Shown here: positions 852-54,609 of the stretch, in pieces
Position numbering within the stretch: position 1 is the first letter of the stretch
Layout of the letters: every line of letters begins with the position of its first letter
Assembly (NCBI GenBank): GCA_001938485.1
Contig: MQRK01225287.1
Coordinates: forward strand, 62,001-117,665
Source of the DNA: Girardia tigrina
Taxonomy: Eukaryota
Direction: 5' to 3'
DNA length: 55,665 nt
Made by a program: the position numbers and the translations under genes
The notes under the pieces: generated by a model
Database searches by the model: none
What the model was told of the DNA's origin: nothing
Seen by the model: the letters and a program-made list of their open reading frames with translations, nothing else

Positions 852-1827
852 TAAAAAATCAAAAATGAATATATTGATCAAATTCTTTATTTCTCATTTT
901 AAAATTTTCAAAATTCACAACTGTTTCCAACCATCAGTCTCGTTAACCAAAAACATTTATAAAAAAATTTTTTTTAATTTTAACTAATTTTTATAATTTG
1001 GAATTTCGCCTTGTGATCACAAATTTATTCACATATTTTTTACACAAGCCAAAATTCCTTAAAACTAATTTTTATTTATTTTCTACAAAATCATATATAT
1101 ATATATATATTTTTCTCATCTTAATCCGAACCATCATGTATTCCCGAACACTAATTAAGATTCATCGAAAGAGATTTTCTAAATGTTTGAAGAAGATCCT
1201 TTATGTCAAGCCTAACATCGAATGTTCCAGCCAATCTCGATTTTGATAGAAACGAATTCTAATTTAATGAGTTTCATAATCGAGATAAGCTTGGCTTAAC
1301 TCTAGGTAATGACTCCAGGGTTAAGAAATTACAGGAATTTGTATTTGGTATTCGTTTTGTTAATTAAATATTAAAGAAGTTATTTTTCCAAGAAAGAAGG
1401 TCTTTCTAAAAATGAGATTGTATTCAGGATTTCTTGATCAGGGACTAGAAAAGATAAAATTTCAATTCTTAAAGAAAACGTTTAATAAAAAAATTTTCAT
1501 TAAATCATTCACAAACACTTTTTCAGATAAAATGAATGATTTTGTAATTATTTGTGTAAAAAGAAAGAAGGAAGAAAGCAAATGGGTTTAAAGATCCCTT
1601 TGAACATTTGTTTTCGAATCACGAGATTTTAATATAAATATTTACACAAAACGTTTTAATTAAGATGGCAATTAAAATAAAATTACCATTATTTAATAGA
1701 ATTCGACAATTCAATATAATAAACATTTCGTACGTTGCCCTATTGTAACTTGATACTTTGGTAAGAAATTATTATTCAGTATTTTAGGTTTGTATCACTC
1801 GAGATTACGAATGTCTGGAATATTACC

Positions 1828-3212
1828 TGGAGCGGAGAATTGCCAATTTTGACCGAACATTTATTTTGCCAGTTTCAGTGTATAAAATAAAATATATGAT
1901 TAAATAATTAAATTAGTAAATTGGAATAAATAAATAAATTTCATTAAAATTAAATTAAATAAATAATTAAATATAAAAAAAATAAATAAAAGAAAATAAA
2001 TAGGTTAAATAATTAGTAATAAATAATTGAATAAATAATTAAACATAGAAATCTTTTTTGGTTAAAACGATTTATTTTTTGAGATCGGTTGTAAAATTGA
2101 AGAACAAAGTAAAATTTATAATAAATGGTCAATTTGAACCGCAATTCAAAAAAATGGTGAAAATTGAGCTTTAATACATCGCGACAATTCAATTCAGTTT
2201 TTAATTCGCGATTAAAACTGATTTCTGCTCATCGATTAATTTGAATGTGTTAATTAATCAAATTGTGAGCCTCCTTTTTTTATTGCATTATAATCAATCT
2301 TCTCAATCGGCTAATGTGAAAAAAGGTATGGTGTGTTTGTAATGTAATGTCTGCATGTATGTGTGAATGTGATTGCGTGTTTGTGTGTTAATGATAATGT
2401 GAATGCGATTGGTTAAGTGTGTGTGTGGTGTGTAATTTGTTTTTAAAAATGAAAATTTGTCACAATAACAAAATGGAGGTTTAAAATTTCGACCAATTGT
2501 CAATTTAAAAAAATAAAGGTCTCGTGTTTTGCTCTGCTTTTGAACAATTAAAAAAAATATAAATGTCATTAGTATTAAATTCAAAAGAAATTGATCATAT
2601 TCTTAAACGTTTAAAGGTTACCGATAAAATTGCAAAGGAAACAAAAATATATGATTCCGACGTGTCTTATCCTTTGCGTGTGTTTTGTGAGAGAATAAAT
2701 GTCTCTGCTATCAACTTTCTGATTGGAAAGGGTGCCGATCTTAATTCTGATGACTTACACCACCGGAGACCGTTGTGGTGGGCGGTTTGGAATCAGAACG
2801 AGCAAATAGTTCAATCATTGGTGAATAAANNNNNNNNNNNNNNNNNNNNNNNNNNNNNNNNNNNNNNNNNNNNNNNNNNNNNNNNNNNNNNNNNNNNNNN
2901 NNNNNNNNNNNNNNNNNNNNNNNNNNNNNNNNNNNNNNNNNNNNNNNNNNNNNNNNNNNNNNNNNNNNNNNNNNNNNNNNNNNNNNNNNNNNNNNNNNNN
3001 NNNNNNNNNNNNNNNNNNNNNNNNNNNNNNNNNNNNNNNNNNNNNNNNNNNNNNNNNNNNNNNNNNNNNNNNNNNNNNNNNNTTGTGTAAACGAGATGGA
3101 ATTCCGCTCATTGTTTTGCTCAATAAAATGAAAAGCACTTTTCAACCGACATGTAAAATGAGAAGCCATTATTCTCAGCCTAAAATATCGTGGAGACACG
3201 GATTCCTGTCCA
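1828..3212 (+). mobile_element. Gene-carrying non-autonomous element, copy A (TG...CA ends, 5-bp TSD TTACC), cargo = ankyrin-repeat gene fragment
   Basis: Starts TGGAGCGGAGAATTGCCAATTTTGACCGAACAT and ends TGGAGACACGGATTCCTGTCCA. Flanked by TTACC (1823-1827 and 3213-3217). Both termini recur at 18605 and 19583-19604. Confidence 0.85.
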
Positions 3213-3220
3213 TTACCTAA
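2563..3220 (+). pseudogene. Ankyrin-repeat protein gene fragment carried inside element A (interrupted by an N-gap)
   Basis: ATG at 2563. YPLRVFCERINVSAINFLIGKGADLNSDDLHHRRPLWWAVWNQNEQIVQSLVNK fits ankyrin repeats. After the gap the only open + frame reads LCKRDGIPLIVLLNKM...WRHGFLSIT* through the element end. Intact versus pseudogene status cannot be settled because of the gap. Confidence 0.65.
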
Positions 3221-3655
3221 ATTCTCGGGTATTTTCCCGAAAAATCGCAAAATAAAACTTTTCGTAAAATATTCATATCTTACGATCTATTTAATATACC
3301 CCCTTGTTTATACGTTTACCGCAACTTACCGCTTCGCATAAGAAAACGAGTAAATTCACTGCCACGCGAAACTCTAAAAAAGAGTAGGATAAGTTAACTC
3401 GTCTGCCGAAAACAATGTTTTAATATTAATTTAGTACTAAAAATTTCAATATCAACTTTTATTTGTTTACTTTATTTGAACTCATAAAGTTTACTACATT
3501 AAAAAAACTTGTTGCAAATATATGTTTTGGTATTGACTTATCATTTTTGGTATTAAAATTGATTTCATAAACTTGGATTATTATCAATGTTTTTTAAATA
3601 TAGTTTGATTGTTTTCGGAATAATGGGTCAGTAAATATCTCATATTTTATTCTAG

Positions 3656-4383
3656 ATATGCGACAAATGCTCACTAATGGTCCTCCAAACTCAATGAATG
3701 GTAGCTTCTATTCTAAGAATATGGGACCTACTAATTCTGGAATACCTCCAAGACACCCTCAGTTAATATTTTCTCCAATGAGCAATTTTTCTCCTCCTCC
3801 ATCCTCATTATTCAGATCTAGTATTATGGACCAGTCACAGCTCAATTCTAATTCAGATCAACCTCTTCTATTCATGCCCTCTAATCGATGTGATTCAAGA
3901 AATCCTTTATCAAACCAGCCTCTCTCATCAGATGCCAATTCCATAGAACTAGCGTTATCATCAATGTCTAATCATCCATTTATTGATTCCCAACAAAGTT
4001 CATTCTTCCCAAACTCCATTGAAAATTCATTAGCTAACAATAGCACTCCATTAACTATGATAAATGATACATCATCGTCATCAATAATGGACGAACCTCC
4101 TCACATGCCTCCACTCAGTGATGAAGATTTTCTCAGCCGTATTGGACATCACCCGCCGAACTTATTACAGCATTCTAACAACAACATAAACCCCTGTGAA
4201 CAAAATCTCTCACCATTTATGAACCATTCTTCTTCACCATTTCATCAAAATCACATGAAATTTCTACCTGGATCTGGATTTCCTGTTGATATGAATGGGT
4301 TGGGAGACGCCATATCTGCCAGCTTCAACAACTTACCTTCGGGAATTAATGATGATATTATAACAGCCTTTTCTGATCTATCA
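3656..4383 (+). CDS. Internal exon of an unidentified Pro/Ser/Asn/Met-rich (low-complexity, regulator-like) protein
   Basis: Acceptor ttttattctag ends at 3655, followed by a long open frame (MRQMLTNGPPNSMNG...FSDLS) and donor GTAAGT at 4384 (phase 0). Upstream exons were not identified. Confidence 0.8.
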
Positions 4384-5276
4384 GTAAGTTTTATTATGAT
4401 AATAATTATTATTATCATTTTAAAAAAATGTGTTTATCCAAAATGGTCTTTAATTATGTATTAGGACATCGCCTTTAACAATAACAGTCGTCCATATGTA
4501 AGTTAATCTTTTAAAGAGAATGAGAAATAAGAATCCATTAATTAGACATCGTTTAGTCTCTTAAAATGAGTTGTCATTATGAAAGAGCGGCTAAGTTCTA
4601 AATAAATAAAAAAGTCCCAACAATGTCTAATAAATATGATGGTATAGAAGACCGTCTGTCACAATTCCTGATATTCTGCCGGGTATCCTTAATGCATGAG
4701 GTCTAGAGTTGCTAAAGTGGATAATAATTCGTTTTCTGTTGATTATTTTGGAGAAGTTGTTGATAAAAGTTGATGAAAGATATAGAAAAATTCTGTTTTA
4801 AGAGCTCAAAGTAAATAATGTCATATCCCAATAAATATAAAACTTATAATTTTTTAGATATCCATTTCTACTACTTTAGAGAAGCTATAAATAACAGATT
4901 GATAATTTTTGAGTTTTATCCTTGCTATTCACCTTCCTGATGGTATAAAAATGTCGTAATTGCATCACTTTTGAACTTCTCTGTCAATTGTCTAATTGTT
5001 TTACAAGGTCTCTTAACTTCTGCCTTCTGAAGGTCTTCACCTGAAAAATCATAATGAGCTGAAAGTCTTTTTAAGGAATACTAGTATTTGTAAACATACA
5101 ATACTCTCATGTGAAGTTCACAACTTGATGTTTTAGCAACTTCTGTCTTTCCGGAACTGAAAGATTATCAAATGAAAATAATGATCTCTTTTAAATAGTA
5201 TTGGTTATTGTTGTGGAGATGATTATATGAATTTCGTTTTGACAATTTTAACTATACCTATCGGTATTCTCTAAGA

Positions 5277-5578
5277 CAGCAGTTCTCAATCTGTGGGTCT
5301 CGACACCGTTGAGAGTCGACTGACGATTTGCCAGGGTCGCCAAAGACCATTGAAAAAATGTGTTTTTATTTGTATTCTAATGTGTCAACTCTATTTCATA
5401 TTATTGTAAAACTTTTTTTCGCAAATCAGATATTTACATTATGATTGATAACAGTATTGAGAAACAATAGTATAGTTACTTAAGCCTATTGGCAAAAAAA
5501 TTTTTACAGTTGGGGGTCACCACAACATTCTGAATTGTATTAAAAGAGTCGTGACACTATAAAGGTTGAGAACCGCTG
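5277..5578. mobile_element. hAT MITE resembling SPIN/URR1 non-autonomous elements
   Basis: TIRs CAGCAGTTCTCAA / TTGAGAACCGCTG and 8-bp TSD CTCTAAGA / CTCTTAGA. Internal motifs (CAGATATTTACATTA, TTGGGGGTCACCACAACAT, TGTATTAAA) match my recollection of the SPIN MITE consensus. Confidence 0.8.
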
Positions 5579-6377
5579 CTCTTAGAGGACATATGTTTAA
5601 ATATTAATATTTATACGTAGTTTTGTAAGTAATATTGTAAATTGGCTAAAGGATTATGTATCAGAAATATGATTAAATTCTTGAGCTCACTTAAATTAAA
5701 ATAGCAATCACCAAATTATGATCAAATATGTTATATGTTATTATATATATAAATGTTTTATTAAAGATATGATTAAGTTTGTTACCAAAGATATAGAGTT
5801 TAAATAGAGAATAAATATTACTTTCTTTATTCGGAGGTTGTGATCAGTGATTCTTTAGAATGGACTATCTTTGAACAAAAAGACTGGAGTATGTGTTTGA
5901 ATAATCGTTTGATTGCTTTGTATTTGATAGATTGATAGATAAATTATGTTTTCTTTATTCCTTAATTTTATTTTCTTTTATACTTTAAAAAAAATCATTT
6001 TAAAATTCCTTTCAGTAGTGGATTAAAATGTTAATTGTAATGGATAATCATGTGGTGATTCAAATGAATCATTCTTGAGTAATTTTAACGGATGATTGCT
6101 CAGTAATTGAAATGAATAATATTCTGGAGTCAAAATTATAATTTCTGATTCTAAATTATTTATTTCTGAATTTCTATGCAATGCAATTGATTCAATTTAA
6201 TTTTGAATTTCAAATAATTATAATTAAGATTATAATTTTATATTGACGGGGAAGGGGGAAATATAATTTGACTTTTCCTTCATTCTTTCTTTCTTACTTT
6301 CTTTTAGTTAGGGAAAAGTGACTTCACATAAAAAAATAATAAATAATATAATCTCATAACAAAAAAAATTTTGGTGT

Positions 6378-7553
6378 ACAAGCTTTTATAATTTGTCATA
6401 TGTTTTCGGTTCTGTATCTATTTTACCCACTTCCCACATCTTTTGACTGAATTATCAAAGCCTACTAGGCGAAAACCCGCTTTCTATTTGCATTTAGATG
6501 TAGCAAATTTCAAAGCCTACTGTGAAGGACAGCGTCACTCAAAATTTTTGAAACAATTTATTTTTATAAAGAATCTCAAAAATTATGAAATATTTAAAAT
6601 CAAAAGTTTTTAAGCAAATTTAAGTAAAAAATATATATACCTTAATTAATTTTAAAAAAAGTTATTTTCGGAAATAATCAAATTTTAATTGTAGAGTAAA
6701 AACTTATTTTAAAATTAATTGGGAAATAAAGGATTTTTAAATAATTGATTTAAAAGAAATATATAAAGACAATGATAATTATGTTTTTACTAATTTTAAA
6801 AGTTATTCTAATAATAAAAATTTGAATATTGTAAATTATTTTTTGTATTTATATAGTATTTAAAATTTGTATTGTATTTAAAATAATTGTAGGTAAAAAT
6901 GCTTTTAAACTGAAATATTGATAATAAATAAAACGTTAAAATCTTTATTAATTAAAAAACTTTTCCCAAATAATAGAAAATAACATTAAACTAATTCTAA
7001 AATAATAAAAAATCATTTCGGTTAATTTAGTAAAAATATGACTACAAAATTATATTTGTTTTAATTTAAATTAAATTGCATAAAATAGTGGTATGTAAAT
7101 TTTCAAAAATAAATATAATAAAAAATTTCAATTTTAAAATAACTTATCAGTATTTATAATTTCATATATTTATATAACAATCTGGTCAAAAAGAAAACGA
7201 AGAAAAGTTCCTCAACAAACAATTGTTTTTAAAAAATTGTTAACTAAAAATTGTTTGAATAATTGTTAATTGGGTTAGAAATAAAATTTTGGTATTAATG
7301 AGTCTTAATCTCGATCAAGAACCCAACACCTACTACTGAGGAAAACATGAGAACGGCACTTTAATTACTTTTTGCGCCCAAACTAAAAGCGGTCGATGAG
7401 CAGTGACAGTAAAAAAGTATATTGTCACCTAGAATACATCAGTCCTGAAAGTTTCATGTCGCTAGGTAAACGGGACGTGGGTGAATTTTCGATGGCAAGA
7501 TTTGATGCATCCAGACAGACAAACAAATGAAACGTAATAAAAGCTTGTAAAAA
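6378..7553. mobile_element. Helentron/DINE-like non-autonomous element, interrupted by a solo LTR
   Basis: Short inverted ends TACAAGCTTTTA / TAAAAGCTTGTA, AAAGTTTCA and CAGACAGACAAAC motifs near the right end, and T/A-run flanks. Confidence 0.4.
6521..7328 (+). mobile_element. AT-rich solo LTR, family TGTGA...CCCAACA, copy 1
   Basis: TG...CA ends and perfect 5-bp TSD CCTAC (6516-6520, 7329-7333). Collinear with 42844-43852 in reverse orientation. Strand is relative only. Confidence 0.8.
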
Positions 7554-8668
7554 CATTCACATACAAAAAAATAAAATAAATAATTATAATGCATAACAGA
7601 CAATTATAATGTTTTACAAAGAAAAATCCTAAAACTAATTTAAGTAATTTTAATGAAAATACGAATTCTTAATCATTTACGGATAAAATATTGATCAAAG
7701 AAAGATTTATGTTTATGTACTCTAGACAATATAATTCTAGTTACTACGCCCTATATAAATATATTTAGTTAAAGTAAAGATGTTGAATGAAGAGGGTTCG
7801 ATTTGTTATAAAAAGAATAGTAAAATGTTTGTTATTTATCTTCAATATCAAAAAAAACCAATTTGGTCATATTGTGAGACAATTGAACGATTTATATGAA
7901 CAAAAAAGACTATAATTATTTTCAATTTCTGATTCACAGGTTTTTGTAATCAAATTCGATTTGATTCATCAGATTATAATTTTTATGTATATTTCCAGCG
8001 ATCAATTACACTTTTTAAGTTGATAGCCTTCATTATGACGTTATATTTCATTATATAATTATTCATTATTTAAATACATCATCACATTATACTAATTTGT
8101 ATTTATTCGTTTGTGAAAAATTATCGATTTGAAAGAAAGACTCGAAATACTAGATTTGTTAAGGCAACTAAGACGAACGAGGTGATCAGCAAGAAGAAGC
8201 TGAGAATTCACTTGAAGTAACTCTACGTTGACCAATATGACATATAACAGTAGAAATGCAGATTCCATCAAGGAAAATCCATCGAATAATAAATGAAGAT
8301 CTTGCTTTATTCATGTACAATATTATGAGTTTCGAGAACTCACATAAATTTGTGAATTTTAATATTTAAAATCTCTCAAAGGAATTTTCAAATTTTTTAA
8401 AATATTTCATACATTAAAATAAAGAGGAAGAAATTTTAAAATAAAAAATTATGTTTTATAAATTAAAACATTAGAAAATGTTAGGGTGGAAAATATTTTA
8501 AATGAAAATCTAAAATGAGAATTTTATTATTGAAACAACATTAGAAAATGAAATTTTATAATAGTATAAAATCAAAATGAATTTATTTTTTTATTAAAAC
8601 GAAGAGTTTTTGAAACTGAAAATTTTGAAATAATAAAAATGGAAGAATTTAGTTTAAAATTTTTTAAA

Positions 8669-8690
8669 ATATATATATATATATATATAA

Positions 8691-8730
<40 letters not shown>
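8669..8730. repeat. (TA)n microsatellite
   Basis: Interrupted TA dinucleotide run. Confidence 0.9.
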
Positions 8731-8732
<2 letters not shown>

Positions 8733-8941
8733 TTAACGATTAAAATGGGAACTTTTTAATTGGAAGATTTCTGATATGAAGGTTTATAAAATGAATTTGA
8801 TTTACGTCGAGATGTTTATACCACCTGAATTTCTCTTGCCACAATCTCGTACTTCATGAGCACGTATCTCTTGTTTTATTAAGAATGTCTCATTTTTTTA
8901 AGTGTGTATCTGTAAATTAAATAAAATCAATATTTATTCAG

Positions 8942-9070
8942 AACCAAACTCTCGAAATGGCAGCATTTAACAAGATGAAAAACAATTTCAATCACCAATC
9001 ACCACAAAAATTACACAATTCCTTCAATTTTAATCTTGAATCAACATCGGGATCAGATCAAATATATTAA
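8942..9070 (+). CDS. Probable terminal exon of the same gene (NQTLEMAAFNKMKNNFNHQSPQ...SDQIY*)
   Basis: Acceptor tttattcag ends at 8941. Phase 0 matches the 4384 donor; 43 codons end in TAA with similar composition, followed by UTR-like sequence with AATAAA near 9464. Confidence 0.65.
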   Translation, partial: NQTLEMAAFNKMKNNFNHQSPQKLHNSFNFNLESTSGSDQIY

Positions 9071-10149
9071 TTGAATATCGATGGAGCTATCGAAAAGTGT
9101 CCGATTTCGTCATTCTTCATCACTGATGTGTACAGATTATTGTAATAATTGTCAATTTTCCAAACGATATTACAATCAAAAATTATTGATTTTTCCTGTA
9201 TTGTATAAATCTTCTATTATATATTGATTATTTGTTTTTTGTCGTATGGGACCATTTTATGAAGATAATTATTTGATGTTGTTTTTTTTTTAATTTTATT
9301 GCTGCAATTGAGTGAAATGTGCTGCGAGGAGCGCGAGTGACAATTAACACATCCGATAACAATCGAGTATTGATCAAGTTGATTCTGCGTTTTATTAATA
9401 TTATTATGGAACAATAATTCAGATGAGAATTTTTAGAAAAATTGAATTTTTTATTGGATTTGCAATAAATGAAATACGACTGAATCTGCGGCTTGGTTTA
9501 TTGATGTATTAATTTTTTTGTTTTTTTTTTGACAACTCTCACAAAGATTGTAATATTCCATTATGCACAGTTATTACAAGACAGAGTGATATTCGAATTT
9601 TGTTTCTTTTTCTGGAATATAATGTTGACGATGATGAGGATGATGATGATGAGGTATAATATTTTGATGTTTAAATGTGATGGATTATTATTAATATTAA
9701 TATTATTTACATTTATTATTTGAATATTATCACTAACTTCGATTTTGTAAAAATACATATGTATATGAAATTATTTGGTGGAACTTTAGGGTTGTTTGAT
9801 TATTTATAAATCGGGTCGTTGGTTCTTATAAAACATGAGAATCTGTAAGTATAGACATGATAAGTGTTTCTGGAAGACGAAACTTATAATTGTCAATCAT
9901 TAATTAAATTAATCATTCAAATACATAATACATTGCTATTCAAAATATTTATTTAACTATTTGATAAATATATAATATTTTCCATTAAACTAGTTTTAAT
10001 GTGTAAAAAATAATCATTTTATTCCATTCTTTATACCATATTTTTAAAGGTTTTTTACTCAATGAAATTTAACAAAATTAAACAATTCAAAACTAATTAC
10101 AATACTGAATTTAATTCCGATTAATTAATTTAATTAAATAATGAAAACC

Positions 10150-11110
10150 TGAATTCATTATTTCTATTATTTAGAAATAAAACCTTTGAAATTCTATTTA
10201 CTCACTCCTGAATGTCTATTTCTATCAGCTATTAATGACTTGAAAAAAATAACCAAATCAATACTATTTCCCTGCAGAAAATAGAAGCTTATTGAATCTT
10301 TATACACTCACGATTCACCTTCGAAATTAGAATATACCAAACATGGAACTTACGGATTATGGCCACTACGAAAACACGAAATCTATCTATAAAAGCGGCC
10401 TTGACGTGGAAATTCGTCGTTACTTGAAGAAGATTTGTGGAGCGGTCCCAAATTCATCCAAAAAATGTGGTTTAGGCTTAATCTATGCCCAAGATGAATA
10501 CGCAATACAATATATAATTCAAGTGTACAGGAACATGGTGTGCTCTGACGAAACATCGCGACTTCTCTCCTTTATCAATTTATTCAACACCCTAAACAGA
10601 TATCACTTTACTAAAAAAGAATGGACACTCTCTGATTGCCAAAACTGGATCAACACAGGTGACAAAGAGAATGGATTTAAATCTTGGTGGACCAAGATTC
10701 GGAATTCAATCAAATACCTGAAAGGCATTGGGTTACAAATTCAGTTAGTCACCAACGAGCTAGCTATTTGTTTAAAAGTTCATATATCCAATGATTCCAT
10801 GATACTAAGTGAACATTCAATTGACAATATAACTTTCCACTTGCACAGAATCTATAACAAAATGAAATTTGACAAATGGAGCAAACAAAGGATGGCTGGA
10901 ATGTCAGCAAATAATTGCAAATAATTGATTATTTTTCGACTTCTCGTATTTCTTAAAACATTCATAACTCTTTTTATGAGTCCACAAAAGTAATATCAAC
11001 GATCATTATTCTGAATAATATATTTATCTTAAGAACCACATTGACATTTCTCAATAACATACGGTAAAGTGGAATCTCCAATGACCAACAATTTATTCAT
11101 ATTCTTAATT
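10150..11110 (+). mobile_element. Non-LTR retrotransposon fragment (RLE-type, NeSL/Utopia-like), post-RT region
   Basis: Decayed LFP.QKIEAY.IFIHSRFTFEIR upstream, then ORF 10343..10924 with LDVEIRRYLKKI...CGLGL...W.KQRMAG, resembling the region after the RT in R2/NeSL-group elements. Confidence 0.6.
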
Positions 11111-11204
11111 TTCTATTCTATTGAAATTTATTTTTATTGGTAGAAAATTTTCTTCATTTAACGATTTTGATGAAGTTAAAACAACTCACAGAATATTCTA
11201 GAAC

Positions 11205-11580
11205 TATTAAATCAAAATAAATTTTTATATCCATTCTTTATGCGGGCAGAACTCTATTTGGTCAACAGAATTTTTTTTGTTATGTTTTGTAGAAGAGAAA
11301 ATTACTATTACATTTTTTAAAACATATAATATGTTATTAGTAACTATTTAAATCTTTTGTAGAATGAAATATTTCATACAAAGAATTTTTCAACTCCATT
11401 TTACAATTAAATAACATAAATTTATTATAAAGCATGGAAGGAAAAAGACCATTTATATTTAATACAGTTAAAACATTTGTTGCAGAAACTATTTTTTGAT
11501 TTACTAGTTTGATCAAATTTTTACATAATCATTTATTGTTATCGATAATGAGTATGTGTACAAAGTTTGAAGAAAATTGT
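11205..11580 (+). repeat. Interspersed repeat (Helitron/DINE-like), also at 41790-42065
   Basis: Shared blocks TTTTTATATCCATTCTTTAT...CAGAACTCTA and GATCAAATTTTTACATAATCATTTATTGT...CAAAGTTTGAAGAAAAT. Confidence 0.6.
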
Positions 11581-11799
11581 GACAAAATTTCAATTTGAAA
11601 TATGTAAAGATATCCTGGGATATACATTGATTGCTCAAAGCTATGTTCGCTGTATAGGCATTGTATATAATGTATATATCTTTGACTTGTGTTGGAGATT
11701 ATTGTTATCAACCGGCTACTGGTGCATCTGCCGTGATTGTGTCGGTAAGATTTGTCGTCACCGCATTTGACATCAGTTGGTTATATTGACCGGTATTTT

Positions 11800-12500
11800 G
11801 TTTATGCCATGTCGAGTTGGCATATTTGATATTCGACACCATGCACATTGCAGCATTCCAAGTGTTGCACCGACAGTCGTCCACCGACCGAAACTGGTTT
11901 TCCAATACCAATCTTTGTTGGTATCATATGAAGTTCGGCATAAAAGCCAGGAAATGTCACCCAGGCTGCACGTGGCAAGGAAACAAAAACAAGCTCCACA
12001 TGGACAACACGTGTATTTACCACTCCCGTTTCGGCCAACAGATAAACAGGTGCGCGCCAGCTCTTTCACCTCCTAAAAAAACTAAGTTCGCCTTCAGTCT
12101 TCGCAGTCGACTCAGAAGGTGTAAACAATTGCTGCAGCATCTTCACGTGTAACGCAACCATCAACGATCATTCTACCCGTACAGCATCGTTTTTGGCCGA
12201 TACTGGCTCGGCCAGATCCGTTTTACCCAGAGTGTTTAAATCACGGAATAGTTGTTCCGACCGCCATCTCACAGCCGCCAACGGATCAGTTGTCCACACG
12301 TGTGGCACAATGCAAATATCGTTCCAGCTTGCCATCTTAGAATCGCAATTCCCCTGAACTTTCCCCATTGCCGATATCACACAACTTATGTCACACAACA
12401 ACTTGGAGCAGACTTTTTTTATCACTTTAATTTAATGGTAGACTGTAAGAACAAAAGACTCATCCTTAGTTACACTCTGGAAACTCCACACGCAGGTCCG
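11800..12500 (+). mobile_element. Ty3/Gypsy gag-protease relic
   Basis: Gag motif CWYHMKFGIKARKCHPGCTWQGN, protease FLADTGSARSVLP, then LTAANGS and LGADFFYHFNLMVDCKNKRL. Frameshifted. Confidence 0.8.
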
Positions 12501-12529
12501 ATTTCAGCTCAAATTTGCTCTCTTTTTGT

Positions 12530-13305
12530 CGAATAGGAGCTGCAATAGTATTCATTTCTATTTTTATAGCCTTTTTTACCAGATTATCGTAATTTGTATA
12601 GTCCACATAACAAAGTGCTGTTCTTATATTATTTTGAACTCCAGCCCAAAACTGATCTTCAACTATCTTTTTTGTTTGTTCTGTCCGATTTCTCTTTTCT
12701 CCAAACGCTTTTTCCGCAAGTGTGGATAAATGAAAAGCGAATTCACCAACTGATTCCTCTGCATTTTGAATTCGAGAATAAAACTTTTCCGTATGATTCT
12801 ACCAACATCGCCACTTATTATTTTTTCAGCCATTAAATCTTTCATATTTGCCCAAGTTTCAACTCCATTTGATTAAAAACTTCTCTAGCTGCACCTTTTA
12901 AATATAACGGTAATCTTTGAATCATTATTTTTTTCGGCTCATCCATACGCTGTAGCAAACATAAAATATTCTATCATAAAATCTACGAATTCTACGGGTC
13001 TCCCCATATTGATTTACAGGTAACTTTTGACAACTCGCAAAATCTATATTATTCTCTATATTTTCTGCCATCGTTTCTTTTTTAACTTTGTTTCCAATTT
13101 CTAAAAAGATAATTAGACGTTTTGATACTTTTTTCGAAATTTCAATTTAAAAATATACCCTTTTTGTTTTAAGAACAGAGGGCTCACCAAATATATTTAT
13201 GTTGGGTATTAAAATCTTTAATCTTAAATATTTACTTTTTAAAACACAAATCTTTAATCTTTAATCGTTAATCTAACTCCAATTAATCATTAAGGACTTC
13301 CAACA
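12530..13305 (-). mobile_element. 5' part of an LTR retrotransposon: short LTR, PBS and decayed gag
   Basis: TGTTGG...CCAACA box at 13200-13305, PBS-like TGGTGAGCCC on the minus strand near 13180-13189, and gag ATG near 13071 with QRLPLYLKGAAREVF, RIQNAEESVGEFAFHL and EDQFWAG. Confidence 0.7.
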
Positions 13306-13639
13306 TAAATATATAAATAATAAACACAAATTCTTTTATAAAACTTTGTTTTAAAATAATAAATAAAAATAAATTTTTATAATAACTTTACTTGACGCCT
13401 TTGTTTTTGTTTTTTGTTAAGAGAATTTTTTTGGGTAAACTAAAATAAATTTGCTGCTGTTTATATAGTGGTTTTCATCAGCCTTAAAAATTGATAAAAT
13501 AAAACAAAGACTAAAATATTTTTAATTTTCAATTCCAAATTTTGTTAAACTAAATATTATTTTATTTGAAATTAATAATTTTACAAAAAGAATTATTTTT
13601 AATTTTTTTTCTACATAAAATTTTATCAAAAATGTTCAT

Positions 13640-14460
13640 ATGTATTTTTCGAAACCCTAATAATATTAATGGATATCAATACATACTCGCGATAATCAAT
13701 CAATTTAGCAGATACATTAGTTTGAACGTAGTGGCTCCTCAAGATGAGAAAACCGTTCGAAAGGTTTACTACACAAATGGATTTGGAAATTCGGATCACT
13801 AAAAGAAATGCATGTCGGTAGAGGGAAAACTTTCGAGTCAGCACTTTTTAAAGAAACAGTGAATAGATTTAAAGCAGGGATATGTATATCCCAGTCCATA
13901 TCACCACAATATCAATAGAATATTGGAGAGATTATTCAGAATAATTAGAGATACCATGAATATACAGATGAAAGACGAAGACCACAAAGATATGTCAAAA
14001 ATCCTGTCAGAAATAGAGTTTATGCTAAAGAGCACATTTAAGCAACCACAGGGACATCTCCAGCATAAATATTTTTTGGTAGGAAACTAAGATATTGATA
14101 GAAAAACTCCTAGGAAAAGAGGCATGTCGAGAAAGAAATGAATAAAAACACGACACAGACGAAACGAGTATTCCGAATTGGAGATAAAGAGCTTATAAAG
14201 AAAGAAAACGTAACAAAGAATGAGGATCGATATATGGGTCCATCCGCAACAAAGGACCGACGATTTGAAAGAAGTTACTAGATACAATTAGATGATGGTA
14301 GAATTTCGTTCACCAATGTGGAATGGCTAAAGCAATTTAAATCGAGGGGGATGTGAGGAATATTTTAAATTTGGTATGTTGAATTTTGTATGTTGAGTTT
14401 AGTATTTTGGAATGTATTTCTCACACCCAGATGGAAAATTGGTATTTTGGACGTTCGCGA
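13640..14460 (+). mobile_element. Gypsy integrase relic with PPT and start of 3' LTR
   Basis: YQYILAIINQFSRY...KWIWKFG...GRGKTFES, then polypurine GAGGGGGA (14344-14351) followed by TGTGAGG at 14352. Confidence 0.75.
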
Positions 14461-14479
14461 TTATTCGAGTATGAATTCG

Positions 14480-15451
14480 ATTGAACGTTCCCTTGATGGA
14501 ACTTTTTGGTAAGCACTACTGTAAGGAAGAGGCTGTGGTAGAATACCAGTTTTTAGTATGTTCAACGAAGTGTCATGATCAACTGCATATTCTAAAAGAA
14601 ATATGCTTGAGAATGTAATGAGTGCTTTTAAACTCATAATGATAGCGATATGATCGGTCATATCAAAGTGTGTACTGAAACAGAAGCCCGTATAGTTTTG
14701 AAAAAAGATGATTGGTCAATTACAAAGTCAGCATTGCAAGATTTTCAACAGATTTTGTATGCTCGAAGAGCACATGAAGCAAAAGCCTTGAAGGTTTCAT
14801 AATTTTGGTGTAAGAAATGGGAACCAAGTTCCTTTCTACAAGCAATGTCCAGATACAAATTCATGATAATTCTTCGATGCATACGCCTCGACAAAAGAAG
14901 CTAACGAAGTCAGAGATTAAAAACGGACAAATTTACTTTAATTTATGTGATATTGACCATAGTTATCCAAAATTATCAGACTTGTTACAAATCTGACGTG
15001 AATCTTACAATTGATGAACAATTGTTTCCAATCAAAACTAGATGCCGTTTCACCCAGAATATGCCAAAAAACCGACAAATCTGGCATAAAAGGATTATAT
15101 GATCAGATCATTTACAAAACTGTATAAATCAGACAATTACGTTCTCACAATTTACAAATAAAAACCAAACAAAAAAGTATTATTCCCAGTTCTAAACACA
15201 AAAATGTGAAAATATAAAAAAAATGCCAAATTGGGTTATGTAAGAAAAATAGGTCGAACTCTCTTTGTGTTAAATGTAATAACTACGTAATCGGAAAAGT
15301 ACATCAAAAATAGAATTTACATGTTAAAAATGTATTGAAGACAACAGTAAATAAAAATCTGTAACACTGTGTTTTAATATTAATTTTAAGTATATCCGTC
15401 AAGAAGACGGAAATCAGTAAAAAAGGTATGAAGTCAATGTCGAATCTAGTG
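14480..15451 (+). mobile_element. piggyBac transposon relic (internally deleted)
   Basis: AMSRYKF..ILRCIRLD and LTIDEQLFPIKTRCRFTQNMPKK motifs. Right end ...CTAGTG is followed by TTAA (15452-15455). Confidence 0.8.
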
Positions 15452-15784
15452 TTAAACTAATAGGTACAATTTTTTTTTGAAATCTGTTTAAAGTATTGAT
15501 AAACTAATTTCTTTGTTAACCATAATTGAAACTAGTCAATAACAAAATAATATGCTTTCCCTAAAATATTTATCTATGTACGTCGCTGAAGTATAATCCG
15601 ATATACATTTCAATATTCTTATAAAAATGCTTCATTGTGCGTCCATATTTTTAGACATTGTAAAGTATACCGCTAAAAATAGTTGATAATCAAATCAAAT
15701 CTTTTATTTAAAAAAATATATACCAAAACATTAATAAATTAAAGGTAAAAATAAATAACTAAATAACTTTATTTAGATAACAAA

Positions 15785-18700
15785 TTAGGCTTTCTGTGGA
15801 GGTTTTTTAATCCGTACAGAAAATCCTTCACCGGTTTCCCGATAATGTGAGCGACGCTCCAAATATAAATCCGTTATCTTCTGTGAGAACTTTTCGTCGT
15901 AAAACCTGAAAGGCCATGGCCATGACATCAAAGTAAGTTTAATATGTTTTTAGACTATTTTTTCTATTGCTTATCATTTTCAACAGATTTTGAAATTTAA
16001 TTTTTACTATCATATTTTAAATGACTTCAAATACTTTTCATAAAAACAATTCGACATTTTTTTAGTTTTTTCTGTAATAAAATATTGATTTTTGATTGTT
16101 GTATTGATAATACAAAAAGATTAATATTTTAAAATTAAGAAATTAATTAATTAATTAATACTTTTAAAAATCTATGGTTATATTTGGAAAGTTTGTATTT
16201 TAACACGAGTAATTATCATGAATTGACTTGTTATGATTTTGACTTGCTTATTGTCGGTTTTATTTTTCAAACTTTTTTGATTAATTAATCCATTAATTGG
16301 TAAATGTTTTGATAAATATAAAATTTGATTGAGAATGAATAAGTTATCGAAATTTCAGCTATATCCGATAATGAAAAGTGAGAGAAATGAGAGCCGAAAG
16401 AATTGTCCCAAACAGAAAGGCAAACTCTGCGAATGAATATATAATGGGATAAAAAACAACTCCTTTAAGTTCCCCTAGAGTAGTTATTTTAAACGGGTGT
16501 TTCGATCTCGACATATACAAATTTTTTGATACTTTTGAAAAATGATAAAAAAATTTGAGGTTTTTATAGCCAAAAAGAAAATAATTCCAAAGAGGTAGAG
16601 TGTTAAATGATAAGTAAGATCATGTGTTACATTACAACCAAATCAATATTATCCCATCACAAATCAATTAAACAAATTTTTTGCAATAAATATTTTTCAA
16701 TTGTATTACCTGTCATACTATACTTATGGACATGTAATGTCTTATGCAAGAATCTGTTGTTTATCTTAAGTTGTGAATTATTAAATGTCACATGATCCTC
16801 GATGACACTGCTTTTCGTGCAATCAACAGAAGCTTTTCGTTCAATCAAGGGGTTACTACTGAATTTTATAATACAGATCCAGTAATATTATTAATACTGT
16901 TAGTTGCGTTTATATCGTTCTCAATATTGGAATTAGAATTCATCGAAATTTTTATTAGAACAAATTAATAATTTTTATTAAAAACAAATTTAAACAAAAC
17001 TTCACTTTCTTTTGATAATCCATTCGCCGAAATTTACCTTAATTTTCAAATTCTGATTAAATTTTTCAAAACATAAACTTAAAAATAATATTTAATTTGA
17101 TTTTAATTTAAAATTAATTAAAATTTATTCCAAAATAATATTTATTGTTAAAATTTAAGAAAACATTTTATTCTGAAATATTACAAATTAATTTACAGCT
17201 CAAATTTATTATTTTAAAAAAATATATACTTTAAAATATAATTTATTTCAACTATATTACAAAAATTGATTTAACATTTAATTTTAAATATTTTTTTAAA
17301 AAAATTTAAATTATGTTTTAAAATTTTAATCATTTCAAAATTACAAAAAAAATTTTTAACGAAAAGAAAATTAACTAACCCGTCATAAATACAATTAACT
17401 AATGAAATTAATCCTGTTACCCACACTATTGTTTCCTTCTTTATTGATTTTAAGAGAGTTTTTTAAGTAAACTTTTAATTTTCAAAAACATACTTAATAT
17501 TGTATATTCAAAACCAGAATCAAATAACATATTACTATTATCTTTTTTTAATTAAAATTTATCATGAATATTGGATAGAAAAAACTTTCCTTATAACAAA
17601 GAATATATTTCCGTATACTCGGAATATTTTCTGCAAAGTTTGGAATACTTTCCTTGGGATTTGAAATATCGTATTTTTCCGTGTACGACCTTTTAAATAA
17701 ATAAAAGACCCCCTTTATAGCAAAATTTAATGAACATTTAAAGTGAATTTTCAAAAATTAGTAAATATTTGAAATATTTCTCCAACACAAAAGATTTCAA
17801 TTTATTTTCTGGAATGAATTAAGGTACTTTTTGAACTTTTTTCCAAAATTGCACACCAAAAAATAAGGGGGGGATCTTATACACGGAAAAATACGGTACT
17901 TTCCATATATGAGAAGTTAGTTAAAATTTCATCTCGCCAAATATTTTTTTAGAAAATTCAAAATTTAATATTATAATCTCAAAAATTAAAAATGTTCATC
18001 ATTATGATGTCTAATTTTAATAGTGAAAATAACATAAAAAAGGAAATATATATGGTTAGTTGCGTTTAAAAAAAACGAGTTAAATTTTATACTTAACAAA
18101 ATAAAATGTGATAATTACAAAATGACGTTCCAATCTATGTATTATCATGTACTATCAATAAAAAATAAATAAAAATGTCTTGCTTGAATGACAATTGCTG
18201 ATTTATTTACCGCTTTATACATAAGAAATATGAAATTATATAATAAAGATAATTAATTATATAATTGAAATCAAGTTAAAATAAAGTAAGAATTAATTAA
18301 TAAAATTAAATGATGTTTTAAAAAAATAGGAATTTAAAATAGTGGTTTGAATAGTTTGACCATTGTTCATTTTCTTCGGTGAACAATTATTTATTTATTC
18401 GTCTAGTCAATTATTATTGTTTGAATGTCGAGACCGAGTGGGAAAGTGGTTGGTTCGGGTGGTTGAATTATTGATTATTTTGACGAATATTTTGCTGAAA
18501 CGAACTTTGTCAAATATTTTACTAAAACAAATTTTGTTCAATGATTTTGCTGATACGAAATTTATTGAATAATTGACTTAAATGAATTTTTGATATAGTA
18601 CGAATGGAGCGGAGAATTGCCGATTTGACCGAACATTTTTGCCAGTTTCAAGGAAAATTCAAAAATAAAATATAAAATAAAAATATAATTAAATTAATAA

Positions 18701-21700
18701 AATAATTAAATAAATCCTTTAATTAAATAAATAAAGTAATTAAATAAAAACTAATTTAAATTAAATTAAGAAATTAAATAAAATAATTAAATAACTTTAA
18801 AAAATTAAACAATAAATTAAATAAGTAAATACATACTTCATAAACAAAATAAGTAATTAATAAAAAAGAGAATTTGTCAATTAAATAAAAAGTCTTCAAA
18901 AAGATATCTTTGTTTACGAATAAATGAATTTAAAGAAATTTTGAATGAAAGTTGAATTTTGAGTTGTATTAAAAATTTTGAAAGAACAAATAAAATATTT
19001 CAAGTTGGAAAATAATTTTTGTCTTCATTTTCAATTCTACGTAAACTTAATAATGATCTTGCTGACAAATTTAAAAATAAACGATGGATTGGTGTTAGCG
19101 ACTTCAATGCAAGAAGATGAAAAGATTAAAAGTTTAAATAATCATCAAAATCAAGTGAAAACATTGTTTAGAAAAATGACTAATTTGTCTCACTCAGTTT
19201 GTTCCCTTGAAAGTGATCAATATATGTTTTATTATTTGATGAATAGAGAAATTTGTTGTATCATCTTAACTAAAAAGAAATTTTCTAAAAAGGTGGCATT
19301 TGCATTTTTGATTGATATTATAGGTGAATTTCATAATAAATAAGGCAGTACATTTGAAATTGTGTTGAGACCGTATGTATTTATTAAGTTCGATAAAGAT
19401 ATTCAAAATTCACAAAAGAATATACAGTCACCCGAACACCAATAACTTTTAATCAAATTAATTATAATTTGAATGATATTCAAAGAATTATGGTGAAAAG
19501 CATTAACGATGTAATTCTACGAGGAGAATCTCTAAGTGCTTTAGATGATAAATTGACAGACAATTCTTCTCTTTCCAAAACATGGAGACACGGCTTCCTG
19601 TCCAACGAAGTTTAATGAATTTGAGTTAATAATTTACTGCATGAATTTCGCTAGCAATTTAATTTTGGCTAAAATTTTTGTGAACGCAATTTTCTTTAAA
19701 TATGAATTTTCGTTTTGAAAGACTTATTTTGTTTATTTTTCAATTGATATTAATTATTTTTAACGATTAAAAATAAAATACTATCACTCGAGCCGAATAA
19801 ATGTTGAGAAATATGAAAAAAACAGTTATCTAAAATATGGATCCAGCACGAACAAAAGCAATGCAAAACGTACCATGTCTCTCCTACCACTTGTCAGTCT
19901 CTATGGAAACCTGAGAACTGTATCGAACAAAAATAATAATAACGAAATGATAAGATTCTATAATAAATTTAACTTTTGGAATTAACAATTAAAATAAATT
20001 TTAATACAACTTTTTTTAGAAAGAAAAGAAATTTGAACACATTTATTCTTCGAAATACAGGCATTTATTCAAGTCTTCAGTCATCTTTCAGTCAGTTTCT
20101 CGATTCCACGAGTATACCCCTGTGTCGTTTTAGAAGCAATGAAATCGCGGCACCCTTGTCCAACCTTTTCTACTGAATTGAAATGCTGCCATTTTAGAAA
20201 ATGCACCATTGCCCGAAAGAAGTGGTAGTCGCTGGGACAACGTCAGGACTGAAGGCACGGTGTGGCAAAACTTCGATCCCCTGCAGATCTTGCACTTTAC
20301 CACCAGTCAAACGTGCAGTGTGTGCCGGAGCGTTGTCTTGTTGTAGAAGAACTCGGTTAAGATTGACTAATGCCGCGTAAAGCTCAAAAAAGGATGGCAT
20401 AGACTCTGTCCAGCTGCTGAGTGTAGAGGTTGGCATTCACAGTATGCCCCTCCGGAACCTGTTCGAAGTGGATGACTCCCTCGAAATTCCACCATACACA
20501 GAGCATAATTTTGCAGTCAAAGCGTCCTTATTTAACCACGCGTTGGGCTGGCACACCAGGGTAGAGCCACTGATTCTCCTTGTTGGGATTTCAGAAAAAT
20601 ATCCATTTTACATCCCCCGTCACGATACTTCTAAAGAAGCAGATGTCATGGGATGAGCAAGCAATTCTTTGCAGAGAGCAAGTCATTGTTGTGCTTGAGT
20701 GGCTGTCAGTTCGTGAGGAATTTGTCGACACCGTCTATCGAGAAGGCCAAGGTGATGAAGATGACGTTGAATAGTGGAGTGTGAAGGACCGAGATCTGCT
20801 GATAATTTCACGTAGGTGCAGGGTTGCTCCTCTACATCTTTACGAATGTGCCAACATCAACAACAGATGGCCACCCAGAGCGAGATTGGTATACTAAACT
20901 GATGTCACCACTTGAAAGACGCTTGAACCACAATTGTGAGATACGAACACTGACCGTACCTTCACGTTCTACTTAACATATTGCCCGGGCTGCAGTAATT
21001 GCATTGAAGCCTTTTTTCCAGTAATGTCGCAAAAGGACTCGAATTCCGTATTTTTCGCTCTCCATAATCTGATAAGGATAAACGAACAAATGTTTAATGA
21101 ATAAACCAACATTATACATGGAGATTTGTCATGCAATACCATAATAATATAAAAATCAATTATGCCAAAATAGAACGAAAAAACGTTTGAATCACCCTAG
21201 AATTAAAAAGGCAGAAAAAAACAGTTTAAATGACATCAAATTGTGAAAGATCTTTTAATTTTTGAAAGAGTTTTAATGACTCTAAATGTGGTGTTAATAA
21301 ATGTTTTCATAATAATTGTGTCAGTACATTAGAGAGACGTACACGGTGTGGAATGTATAAACTAAAGGATCTGTAACCAACAATCCGAAGTTCTGACGTT
21401 ATAATCGTACTAAAGAAAACGTTGATATAATCTAATGTACTACCGGTAATTTATTATTGCAGTGAACGTTGAATGAATAAATGGCTCTATTTCGAAACTT
21501 TGAGGGATTAAAACACCTGCTTAAAATTTCATTACCAAAATGATAACACCCATAACTATGATTGCTTCCACTTTCTCATGGTGTTATAAAGAGAAATTAA
21601 ATAAAAACACATGACACAAGAACATTTGTACACCTTTGTATCTGATTTAAGATTTAAATCGGAACAGTGTCAATGGTTCAATACTAAGTGTGTTAATGCG

Positions 21701-28578: not shown

Positions 28579-30127
28579 ATATAGTATCTGGTGGAATAGG
28601 AAAGCAGCGGATCAGTCAAAGGCTACGATTACAAATGGACCCTGTCAGTTAGAATGAATGAAACAATATGAATGATATTCTTTTCATTATCTATAGTCTA
28701 TTGTTAGATTATCTGGGGTTAATTTTAAATATAACCCTCTAGCGATACCTAACAAAGGGGTTGTCAATTCAGTTATTGATATTAAATAGATTTTAATCAA
28801 TAATCAATTATTAATTTAATTTATTTAACAATCTAAATCCAAATCAAAAGACAAGTAAATTTAATACAATAATATTTTAAATTTACAACAAATACAAAAA
28901 TCTTTTATCTACAAGCTGATTAACAATAGTTAGTTAAAAATGTGTAACCCCCTACTTATGTCCTATTTACGCTGAAGGTCTGGTTCTCGTCCAGAGCCTT
29001 TGATATTTTAGGGTGCGGGTTTATTCAAATAATATAAAATAACAAAATTTTAATATAAATAAAAATTAAAGATTTTAAAAAGTTATAACTTGTAATAACC
29101 TNNNNNNNNNNNNNNNNNNNNNNNNNNNNNNNNNNNNNNNNNNNNNNNNNNNNNNNNNNNNNNNNNNNNNNNNNNNNNNNNNNNNNNNNNNNNNNNNNNN
29201 NNNNNNNNNNNNNNNNNNNNNNNNNNNNNNNNNNNNNNNNNNNNNNNNNNNNNNNNNNNNNNNNNNNNNNNNNNNNNNNNNNNNNNNNNNNNNNTTACAC
29301 CGACTCCTTTTATACTTAGGTTTCTTCGGTGTAGGTCTTATGCGTAGGTCTAACTAGTCTAGACTTCAAAACTTCTGACCTTAATATTTCTTAAATTTCT
29401 TAAATAATGATTGACCTTACTTATAATATTTCTTTAGATATAAATAATAATATAATATTATTTATTTTNNNNNNNNNNNNNNNNNNNNNNNNNNNNNNNN
29501 NNNNNNNNNNNNNNNNNNNNNNNNNNNNNNNNNNNNNNNNNNNNNNNNNNNNNNNNNNNNNNNNNNNNNNNNNNNNNNNNNNNNNNNNNNNNNNNNNNNN
29601 NNNNNNNNNNNNNNNNNNNNNNNNNNNNNNNNNNNNNNNNNNNNNNNNNNNNNNNNNNNNNNNNNNNNNNNNNNNNNNNNNNNNNNNNNNNNNNNNNNNN
29701 NNNNNNNNNNNNNNNNNNNNNNNNNNNNNNNNNNNNNNNNNNNNNNNNNNNNNNNNNNNNNNNNNNNNNNNNNNNNNNNNNNNNNNNNNNNNNNNNNNNN
29801 NNNNNNNNNNNNNNNNNNNNNNNNNNNNNNNNNNNNNNNNNNNNNNNNNNNNNNNNNNNNNNNNNNNNNNNNNNNNNNNNNNNNNNNNNNNNNNNNNNNN
29901 NNNNNNNNNNNNNNNNNNNNNNNNNNNNNNNNNNNNNNNNNNNNNNNNNNNNNNNNNNNNNNNNNNNNNNNNNNNNNNNNNNNNNNNNNNNNNNNNNNNN
30001 NNNNNNNNNNNNNNNNNNNNNNNNNNNNNNNNNNNNNNNNNNNNNNNNNNNNNNNNNNNNNNNNNNNNNNNNNNNNNNNNNNNNNNNNNNNNNNNNNNNN
30101 NNNNNNNNNNNNNNNNNNNNNNNNNNN

Positions 30128-30564
30128 ATGCATAAAAAATTGAAAACCCTTTGTCCGGGATTGGTCAATCGAAAAAGTCCCATCCTTCTTCATGATAACG
30201 CTAGACCTTATATTTCAAAAGTGACTCTTCAAAAGCTTAATGAGTTTGGCTATGAAACCCTGCTTCATCCACCATATTCACCAGACCTCTCGCCAACGGA
30301 CTTCTACTTTTTCAGGCATTTGTACAACTTTCTGCGTGAAAAAAAATTCAAAAACCAAAATGATGCTCAAAATGCCTTCCAAGAATTCGTGGCTTCGAGA
30401 ACCGATGCATTTTATGCTGATGGAATAAAACAACTTGTTTTTCGTTGGCAAAAATGTATTGATGTCAACGGTTCATACTTTGATTAATAAACTTTTGTTT
30501 CTGTGAATTTGCACGTCTTTGAAGTTTGTGTCCCAAAACCGCCATTATTTTTCGACCAACCTAA
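30128..30564 (+). mobile_element. mariner element 3' part, same family as 24135-25411
   Basis: Uninterrupted ORF with HDNARP and HPPYSPDLSPTDF. Nearly identical to 25074-25411, with the same right TIR followed by TA. Confidence 0.92.
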
Positions 30565-30716
30565 TATGTGAAATGCATTCTGCAGTTAAATATTATTCAA
30601 CTGTTCTGTTTTTGGTGTTTTTTTCAAATTCCTGCTAATAAAATTAATTAGTTGAAATTGTATTAAAAGAAGGATGTGTGAAAATTGAAGTAGTGGAAGC
30701 TAACAAGTTAATTGTA

Positions 30717-54608: not shown

Positions 54609-54609
54609 A

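Follow-up and report, generated by a model that had tools for sequence, protein, structure and literature searches.

Candidate solo long terminal repeats carrying 5′ fragments of host genes in a Girardia tigrina contig

The stretch of DNA analysed here, hereafter the window, is the 55,665 nucleotides (55.7 kb; 29% G+C) between positions 62,001 and 117,665 of contig MQRK01225287.1 of Girardia tigrina (assembly GCA_001938485.1, forward strand). Two units lie within it, copy A (1385 bp) and copy B (1000 bp), which have their ends in common and carry pieces of two different genes, an ankyrin-repeat frame in copy A and a fragment of Sec22 in copy B (Table 1). Neither contains an open reading frame (ORF) for an enzyme. 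An earlier reading of the window, the original prediction, took the two units for members of a gene-capturing family of mobile DNA cassettes, with different cargo in each copy, that are shuttled by a retroviral-type integrase and fit none of the known templates neatly. The boundaries, the cargo and the distribution of the units were examined to see which of these claims hold and what kind of element the units represent.

Both units begin with TG and end with CA, and each is flanked by its own exact 5-bp target-site duplication (TSD), TTACC for copy A and ACGAA for copy B. At the composition of the window, the probability of such a match is 0.002 for one unit and about 4e-6 for both together. 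The first 17 nt of the left terminal box occur exactly twice in the window, on the same strand, as against 0.03 expected from shuffled sequences; the 22-nt core of the right end likewise occurs exactly twice on the same strand, with a shuffle expectation of 0.00. On the left side, the similarity between the copies extends over about 218 bp (1828-2045 versus 18605-18811, 75% identity), which corresponds to the box and the A/T-rich tandem repeat. The two units, their common ends and their individual TSDs, all read directly in the sequence, are therefore as originally described, except that the common right end, put at 22 bp, proves to be 29 nt long when further copies (see below) are compared: the right end of copy A matches those of the copies called L002, L003 and L001 at 29/29, 28/29 and 26/29 positions, respectively, while copy B has suffered a small deletion just inside it. 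The absence of a real terminal inverted repeat (TIR) was also borne out, since only 7 of the 20 end positions (1-4 and 7-9) match in inverted orientation.

Table 1. Coordinates of the features of copies A and B in the window, and of the regions compared for the motif upstream of the cargo
Feature	Coordinates	Strand	Remark
Copy A, left TSD TTACC	1823-1827	.	Identical to 3213-3217
Copy A, left terminal box, 50 bp, begins with TG; proposed U3 start	1828-1877	+	Aligned with copy B box
Copy A, A/T-rich degenerate tandem repeat	1878-2047	+	Tandem Repeats Finder (TRF) arrays 1885-2047, periods 4 and 23
Copy A, backbone without coding capacity, with a GT-rich block; proposed remainder of U3 and promoter-proximal part	2048-2562	+	2239-2510 matches L001-L003
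Copy A, ankyrin-repeat frame from its own ATG	2563-2829	+	Pfam Ank_2
Copy A, assembly gap (N)	2830-3082	.	Length is an estimate only
Copy A, 101 nt between gap and right end	3083-3183	+	One open frame, without Pfam match
Copy A, right terminal sequence, 29 nt, ends with CA; proposed R/U5	3184-3212	+	Identity to L001-L003
Copy A, right TSD TTACC	3213-3217	.	Read directly
Copy B, left TSD ACGAA	18600-18604	.	Identical to 19605-19609
Copy B, left terminal box, 46 bp, begins with TG	18605-18650	+	Aligned with copy A box
Copy B, A/T-rich degenerate tandem repeat	18651-18865	+	TRF array 18663-18865, period 17, 12.5 copies
Copy B, distal backbone/leader 5′ of Sec22 start	18866-19052	+	Short motifs common with other copies
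Copy B, Sec22 fragment	19053-19582	+	Pfam Longin; tblastn versus full-length Sec22 (P0150)
Copy B, right terminal sequence, ends with CA	19583-19604	+	Inner 7 nt of the 29-nt end altered or deleted
Copy B, right TSD ACGAA	19605-19609	.	Read directly
Regions aligned for the ~15-nt motif	2470-2565; 18955-19055; L001 315-412; L002 400-500; L003 185-283		

The right-end motif does not recur inside either unit, each of which has one left and one right end. Within the window, a pattern search allowing up to three mismatches gave no second copy of the backbone, the joined flanks of the two copies gave no empty site, and the tRNA and Rfam scans gave no matches. The possibility that the termini are primer-binding or tRNA-like sequences was rejected on inspection by eye.

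The cargo of copy B was identified through a Pfam Longin match (19053-19340, 1.1e-13), and a full-length Sec22 of 216 residues (P0150), reached by an exhaustive profile search with the Longin piece combined with a word-indexed search, was used as a comparator. In a tblastn alignment, the cargo is collinear with this protein from residue 1 to residue 178-182 or so, at 64% identity and with no intron-sized insert. It is spread over two frames, with one in-frame stop and at least one frameshift (tblastn and three-frame translations), and it stops short of the end of the SNARE motif and of the membrane anchor. On this alignment, the cargo of copy B is a decayed copy of Sec22 that is cut at its 3′ end.

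The ankyrin assignment in copy A is closer to the threshold, the Ank_2 match (2.3e-6) scoring 28.5 bits against a Pfam gathering cut-off of 27.3. The frame is open as far as an assembly gap and, at the nominal length of the gap, meets a stop 8 nt past it. The 101 nt on the other side are open in a frame other than that of the ankyrin repeats. The gap was left unfilled and its length is an estimate, which makes continuity and frame across it conjectural and leaves unproven that the ankyrin cargo directly adjoins the right end. The identity of both cargos stood up. The matching TSD flanking the gap is the sole evidence that the two halves of copy A form one insertion. The last 30 nt or so before the right end of copy A weakly resemble the tail of the Sec22 cargo in copy B (59-nt BLAST match, 75%, driven mostly by the right end itself).

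The original prediction called for a search for further copies, and three were found. L001, L002 and L003 are contigs of public metagenome assemblies of the European Nucleotide Archive (ENA), from three samples, and were reached through the predicted proteins P0010, P0149 and P0151. All three carry Sec22; their Sec22 parts are 79-86% identical in DNA to that of copy B and 93-97% identical among themselves. In copy B and in all three contigs, the Sec22 cargo stops at the same residue (about 178) and is joined there to the same right end. The sequences that follow are different in every case: the five right ends known are followed by five mutually unrelated flanks, four of them behind Sec22 copies. 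A common end point and a common right-end junction at four or more sites imply that the unit multiplied after a single capture, and comparison of the copies indicates that there was one capture of Sec22, which was then copied to at least four sites. Since the Sec22-bearing copies (copy B and L001-L003) differ by 4-18% in DNA, Sec22 is an old, inherited part of the repeat. To speak of different cargo in each copy therefore overstates fresh capture.

These contigs also bear on whether the arrangement is real or owes its existence to fortuitous similarity or to faulty assembly of a junction. One assembly gap falls within copy A and three more occur elsewhere in the window, which lends such a concern some substance. 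However, the termini have next to no matches in shuffled sequences, the joint chance of two exact TSDs is that given above, and the junction between Sec22 and the right end is reproduced in three independent assemblies from three samples. It is therefore not a misassembly, and I consider an artefact extremely improbable.

Comparison of the copies also revealed a mixed combination of parts. Upstream of their Sec22 cargo, L001-L003 contain the GT-rich backbone seen in copy A (about 2239-2510), at 66-90% identity, whereas copy B is devoid of it except for a short distal motif. The backbone of copy A thus occurs alongside the cargo of copy B, which indicates that the family is a mosaic in which backbones and cargos have been recombined. 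To call the interiors of copies A and B unrelated, as was originally done, is therefore too simple. The Sec22 parts of L001-L003 each show two internal deletions relative to copy B, one of which is common to all three.

L002 contains a second cargo, the front of the RNA polymerase subunit RPB10 (1e-16 for RNA_pol_N in Pfam, covering positions 2-40 of a 58-position profile). The point of fusion is 9 nt ahead of the Sec22 start and falls in a few bases that the two sequences share; the newer of the two fragments is the one on the left. In the right flank of the same contig (1048-1319), a frame resembles by eye part of a DNA-transposon transposase, into which other mobile element the unit has seemingly inserted; a 47-residue piece of it has no Pfam match. 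A further predicted protein of 315 residues, P0001 (Logan contig, run SRR25569773, another sample), consists of two successive Sec22 5′ parts, with two Longin regions in tandem, and might represent comparable stacking of mRNA 5′ parts in another organism.

The three cargos identified, ankyrin, Sec22 and RPB10, have the same geometry. All are in the sense orientation relative to the unit, keep their own start codon, have lost their 3′ part and lack intron-sized inserts, and neither a poly(A) tail nor an inner duplication is found at their borders. In addition, each cargo start codon, irrespective of the gene, is preceded at a distance of 6-25 nt by a motif of about 15 nt (Table 1). It may be a promoter-proximal sequence of the element or, alternatively, a leader that the captured mRNAs have in common. 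A search of the window gave no second match of any significance for the motif, and a string search of the literature, made with a spliced leader in mind, gave no relevant result.

Cargo that is complete at its 5′ end, cut at its 3′ end, in the sense orientation and free of intron-sized inserts points to reverse transcription of mRNA. A different route to such units is that processed pseudogenes made by long interspersed nuclear elements (LINEs), or genomic pieces of genes, happened to insert into the long terminal repeat (LTR) of an active element, which then multiplied them along with itself. Insertions into LTRs are common in regions rich in transposable elements, such as the window, and the left junctions of the cargo lie near a motif that is common to the copies. 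Yet LINE-made copies are typically cut at their 5′ end, keep their 3′ end and poly(A) tail and have variable TSDs of their own, the opposite of what the units show. Independent landings would also have to account for three identified cargos in the same orientation, each with its start codon, and for the same right-hand landmark next to the Sec22 cargo and the last 101 nt of copy A. Capture at the DNA level or by LINE-type enzymes is, in my judgement, very unlikely.

The cargo could also owe its presence to selection, the embedded frames being accessory proteins encoded by an LTR, for example a truncated, anchorless Sec22 or an ankyrin protein; the units would then count for their products and not just for what they passively carry. 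Although they diverge by 4-8% in DNA, L001-L003 retain open frames (137, 147 and 240 residues), the ratio of non-synonymous to synonymous substitution rates (dN/dS) among these frames is 0.28-0.59, and each frame begins a short way past the conserved backbone. Statistically, the surplus of silent changes is nonetheless weak (P of 0.045 to 0.14 on 11-29 changes), all three frames have internal deletions in the longin and SNARE parts when compared with copy B, and the frame of copy B itself is broken by a stop and a frameshift. Maintenance by selection therefore seems improbable; judging from the frames, a function for them is possible but unsupported.

What kind of element, then, are the units? 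Ends of the TG...CA type, a minimal inverted repeat, a 5-bp TSD, a length of about 1 kb, a left half rich in tandem repeats and the lack of an enzyme gene fit a single LTR. The explanation that I favour, and regard as probably correct, is that each unit is one LTR of a family of LTR retrotransposons, present mostly in the solo state, and that template switches gone astray during reverse transcription brought 5′ fragments of host mRNAs into it, where they were stacked just upstream of its last 29 nt. The solo state would be that left by recombination between the two LTRs of a full copy. In the layout proposed, the left box, the A/T-rich repeat and the backbone would constitute U3 (the 3′-unique region) and the last 29 nt a short R/U5 (repeated and 5′-unique regions), with the host mRNA fragments between them. 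A/T-rich boxes and AATAAA strings are too frequent at 29% G+C to inform this assignment.

In such an element, synthesis of minus-strand DNA would start from a primer site just to the right of the LTR and copy the short U5/R. Instead of being transferred correctly to the 3′ end of the element RNA, the nascent strand would then switch into a co-packaged host mRNA at an internal point, run to the 5′ end of this mRNA or to a point of short similarity, and return to the element. Formation of the LTRs would put the chimeric segment at both ends of the DNA, leaving the element mobile and possibly autonomous, with the fragment present in all later copies. Were the accident repeated, the incoming fragment would come to lie on the left of its predecessor, which is the order seen in L002. 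A reverse transcriptase that switches internally into an mRNA and runs toward its 5′ end would yield the cargo geometry observed, and frequent template switching between co-packaged RNAs would produce mosaics of backbones and cargos. The RNA origin of the cargo, the step at which the switch occurs and the existence of full-length parents are presumed, in contrast to the termini, the TSDs, the identity of the cargo, the common Sec22 junction at four or more sites and the RPB10-Sec22 stack, which were observed.

Several observations weigh against this explanation. No paired LTRs, primer-binding site, polypurine tract or gag-pol region with these ends was found in the window or in the collections scanned with DNA patterns for further copies, which comprised metagenome contigs, viral contigs and prokaryotic genome contigs. 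Not one of the five right ends leads into a TGG-type primer site or into internal sequence that recurs among them, although about half should do so if full copies were in the majority; of the source genome the search covered the window, and with five copies the absence of pairs is drawn from a very small sample. An R and U5 of only about 29 nt together would be unusually short. The motif of about 15 nt may be a sign that the left junctions fall within the element itself and not at the 5′ ends of mRNAs. In copy A, the link between the ankyrin frame and the right end runs across the assembly gap; the ankyrin piece, for which a protein search gave no relative in a large protein collection, is a cargo without a detectable parent; and the resemblance of the copy A tail to Sec22 suggests that a common right border with different cargo may in part reflect common descent. 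Finally, to take intron-free cargo as processed is to rely on what is generally known of Sec22 and RPB10 genes in animals.

The proposed check for an autonomous partner with the same ends turned up none in the window or in the collections scanned. The pattern matches L004-L008 were recognized as chance hits in G+C-rich bacterial or phage sequences, not further copies. In the window, a G+C-rich island at about 31797-35400 (42-50% G+C versus 29% overall) is a broken retroelement, with direct repeats of about 100 bp at both ends (31798-31839 and 35303-35344, 88%), a gag-like ORF with a zinc knuckle and faint DUF7047 matches; it was rejected as a partner because its repeats have different ends from those of the units.

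The lack of a full-length parent is in keeping with the mechanism first proposed, in which the single unit is itself mobile as a non-autonomous cassette whose ends are recognized in trans by a retroviral-type integrase, that of a Ginger- or TDD-like transposon or of an LTR element, and which takes along any sequence enclosed by them. No paired or autonomous copy is known from the window or the scanned collections, both complete copies are single units with TSDs of their own, and five right ends have unrelated flanks. But solo LTRs commonly outnumber full copies, so that the lack of pairs among five is weak evidence, and the units do not have the real TIRs (7/20) of Ginger-type elements. Furthermore, there is no known route by which the linear blunt DNA of a single unit would be made available to an integrase, and cargo that looks RNA-derived needs a reverse transcriptase, whereas a single unit has neither a primer site nor a polypurine tract of its own. 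A self-standing cassette is accordingly unlikely. What survives of the integrase proposal is insertion of the retroviral type, as judged from the TG...CA ends and the 5-bp TSDs, and the mobility attested by the five right flanks; a DNA cassette shuttled by an integrase alone does not account for cargo that points to reverse transcription.

If each unit is indeed an LTR, a more far-reaching idea can be put forward, tentatively and as a possibility rather than an expectation: LTRs of this family could grow by repeated mis-directed first-strand transfer, so that 5′ ends of host mRNAs with their start codons are stacked directly downstream of the LTR promoter region, the switches being perhaps guided by a shared leader of about 15 nt. 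Every copy or solo LTR would then be a promoter-equipped gene-fragment cassette, and the family a standing system for exon shuffling or the making of truncated proteins.

Were the LTR explanation true, the repeat of a retrotransposon, and not its interior, would be open to host gene fragments, and the element could keep its own genes while carrying them. Each new insertion would duplicate the fragment twice, and each solo LTR would leave a start-codon-bearing piece of a gene beside a promoter-like region. This would be an efficient route to dispersed truncated genes, to exon shuffling and to small-RNA targets against the parental genes, and the 5′-anchored geometry would provide a natural record of where first-strand transfer errs. 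The units are also a trap for annotation: gene callers turned three copies into 'Longin domain' or 'RNA_pol_N + Longin' proteins (P0010, P0149 and P0151, the ENA calls on L001, L002 and L003), so that the family is a source of spurious entries among proteins.

The remainder of the window contains several other repeats. At 54508-55665, reaching the end of the window, lies a satellite whose 22-bp unit is repeated head to tail more than 40 times (about 93% identity). Two mariner/DDE_3-type transposon ends, at 25074-25418 and 30226-30571, are 96-98% identical and 5152 bp apart; both lie just to the right of assembly gaps (24310-25073 and 29469-30127), and ORF 30128-30487 has a weak DDE_3 match. 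The pair could stem from a recent duplication or from a scaffolding artefact. A remnant of a Mos1-type mariner was found on the reverse strand at 48462-49434, with an HTH_48 match (5e-17) in ORF 49066-49434 and a C-terminal DDE fragment at 48462-48746; further DDE fragments are present at 38669-39124 and 20194-20436, both on the reverse strand. Two blocks (57 nt, 82%, and 70 nt, 91%) are repeated in the same order 30.5 kb apart, at 11219-11577 and 41805-42065, and represent another dispersed repeat family. Decayed retroelement-like frames occur at 11.7-14.3 kb, near the first of these pairs of blocks.

Among the closest known systems are the solo LTRs of Ty3/Gypsy, Ty1/Copia and BEL/Pao elements, with which the units have in common the TG...CA ends, a short imperfect inverted repeat, a 5-bp TSD, a length of about 1 kb, the absence of enzyme genes and, in what is presumed to be U3, a tandem-repeat region that varies. 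The claim that the units fit no template is in this respect not supported as made, since asymmetric ends and the lack of an LTR pair, a TIR and an enzyme, which had seemed anomalous, are all properties of a single solo LTR. The units differ from ordinary solo LTRs in that about half of their length consists of host protein-coding fragments, and no full-length relative was seen from which the superfamily could be named.

DNA transposons form another group for comparison. Ginger2/TDD-type transposons also have ends of the TG...CA type and short TSDs made by a DDE integrase, but they possess real TIRs of tens of bp and encode the integrase, whereas the units have neither and their cargo looks RNA-derived. 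Pack-MULEs (MULE, Mutator-like element), Pack-TIRs and Helitrons resemble the units as non-autonomous-looking elements that multiply host gene fragments. Pack-MULEs and Pack-TIRs, however, have long TIRs and TSDs of 2-10 bp (9-10 bp for MULEs), as compared with 7/20 end matches and 5-bp TSDs here; Helitrons make no TSD, insert between A and T and have TC...CTRR ends with a 3′ hairpin, unlike the TG...CA ends and 5-bp TSDs of the units. In all three, the fragments keep their introns and are taken in arbitrary portions and orientations, which is not seen in the units.

With regard to the cargo, a close precedent is LTR-mediated retroposition, described in animals, yeast and plants, in which partial mRNAs, short similarity at the junctions, multi-gene chimeras and secondary copying are encountered (Tan et al. 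2016; PMC5131818) and to which the chimeric pseudogenes made by Ty1 in yeast, as well as maize Bs1, also belong. Junctions with a few bases of similarity, gene chimeras and later recopying have their counterparts in the similarity at the RPB10/Sec22 junction, in the two genes of L002 and in the presence of one Sec22 capture at four or more sites. Partial host mRNAs, copied through template switches by the reverse transcriptase of a retrotransposon, would be a further trait in common if the cargo is RNA-derived. A known retrocopy, however, replaces the interior of the element and is flanked by both LTRs, whereas the units hold the fragments inside the repeat, beside its last 29 nt, and these fragments are consistently the apparent 5′ ends of mRNAs, stacked from right to left. 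Literature searches for host mRNA fragments in LTRs, to which Repbase and Dfam were external, brought up the related phenomena mentioned here but no account of an LTR in which 5′ ends of host mRNAs are stacked.

Abnormal switching during strand transfer is a known means by which LTRs acquire foreign sequence, BARE-2 and Veju being examples (PMC13317346). BARE-2, a chimera of BARE-1 and Wis-2, and the long Veju terminal-repeat retrotransposons in miniature (TRIMs) resemble the units, as explained here, in that foreign sequence entered the LTR by a faulty switch and was then inherited by a subfamily (PMC13317346, PMC1950507). The difference lies in what was brought in: sequence of another transposon or of unknown origin in the plant cases, and in the units what appear to be pieces of host mRNA together with their start codons.

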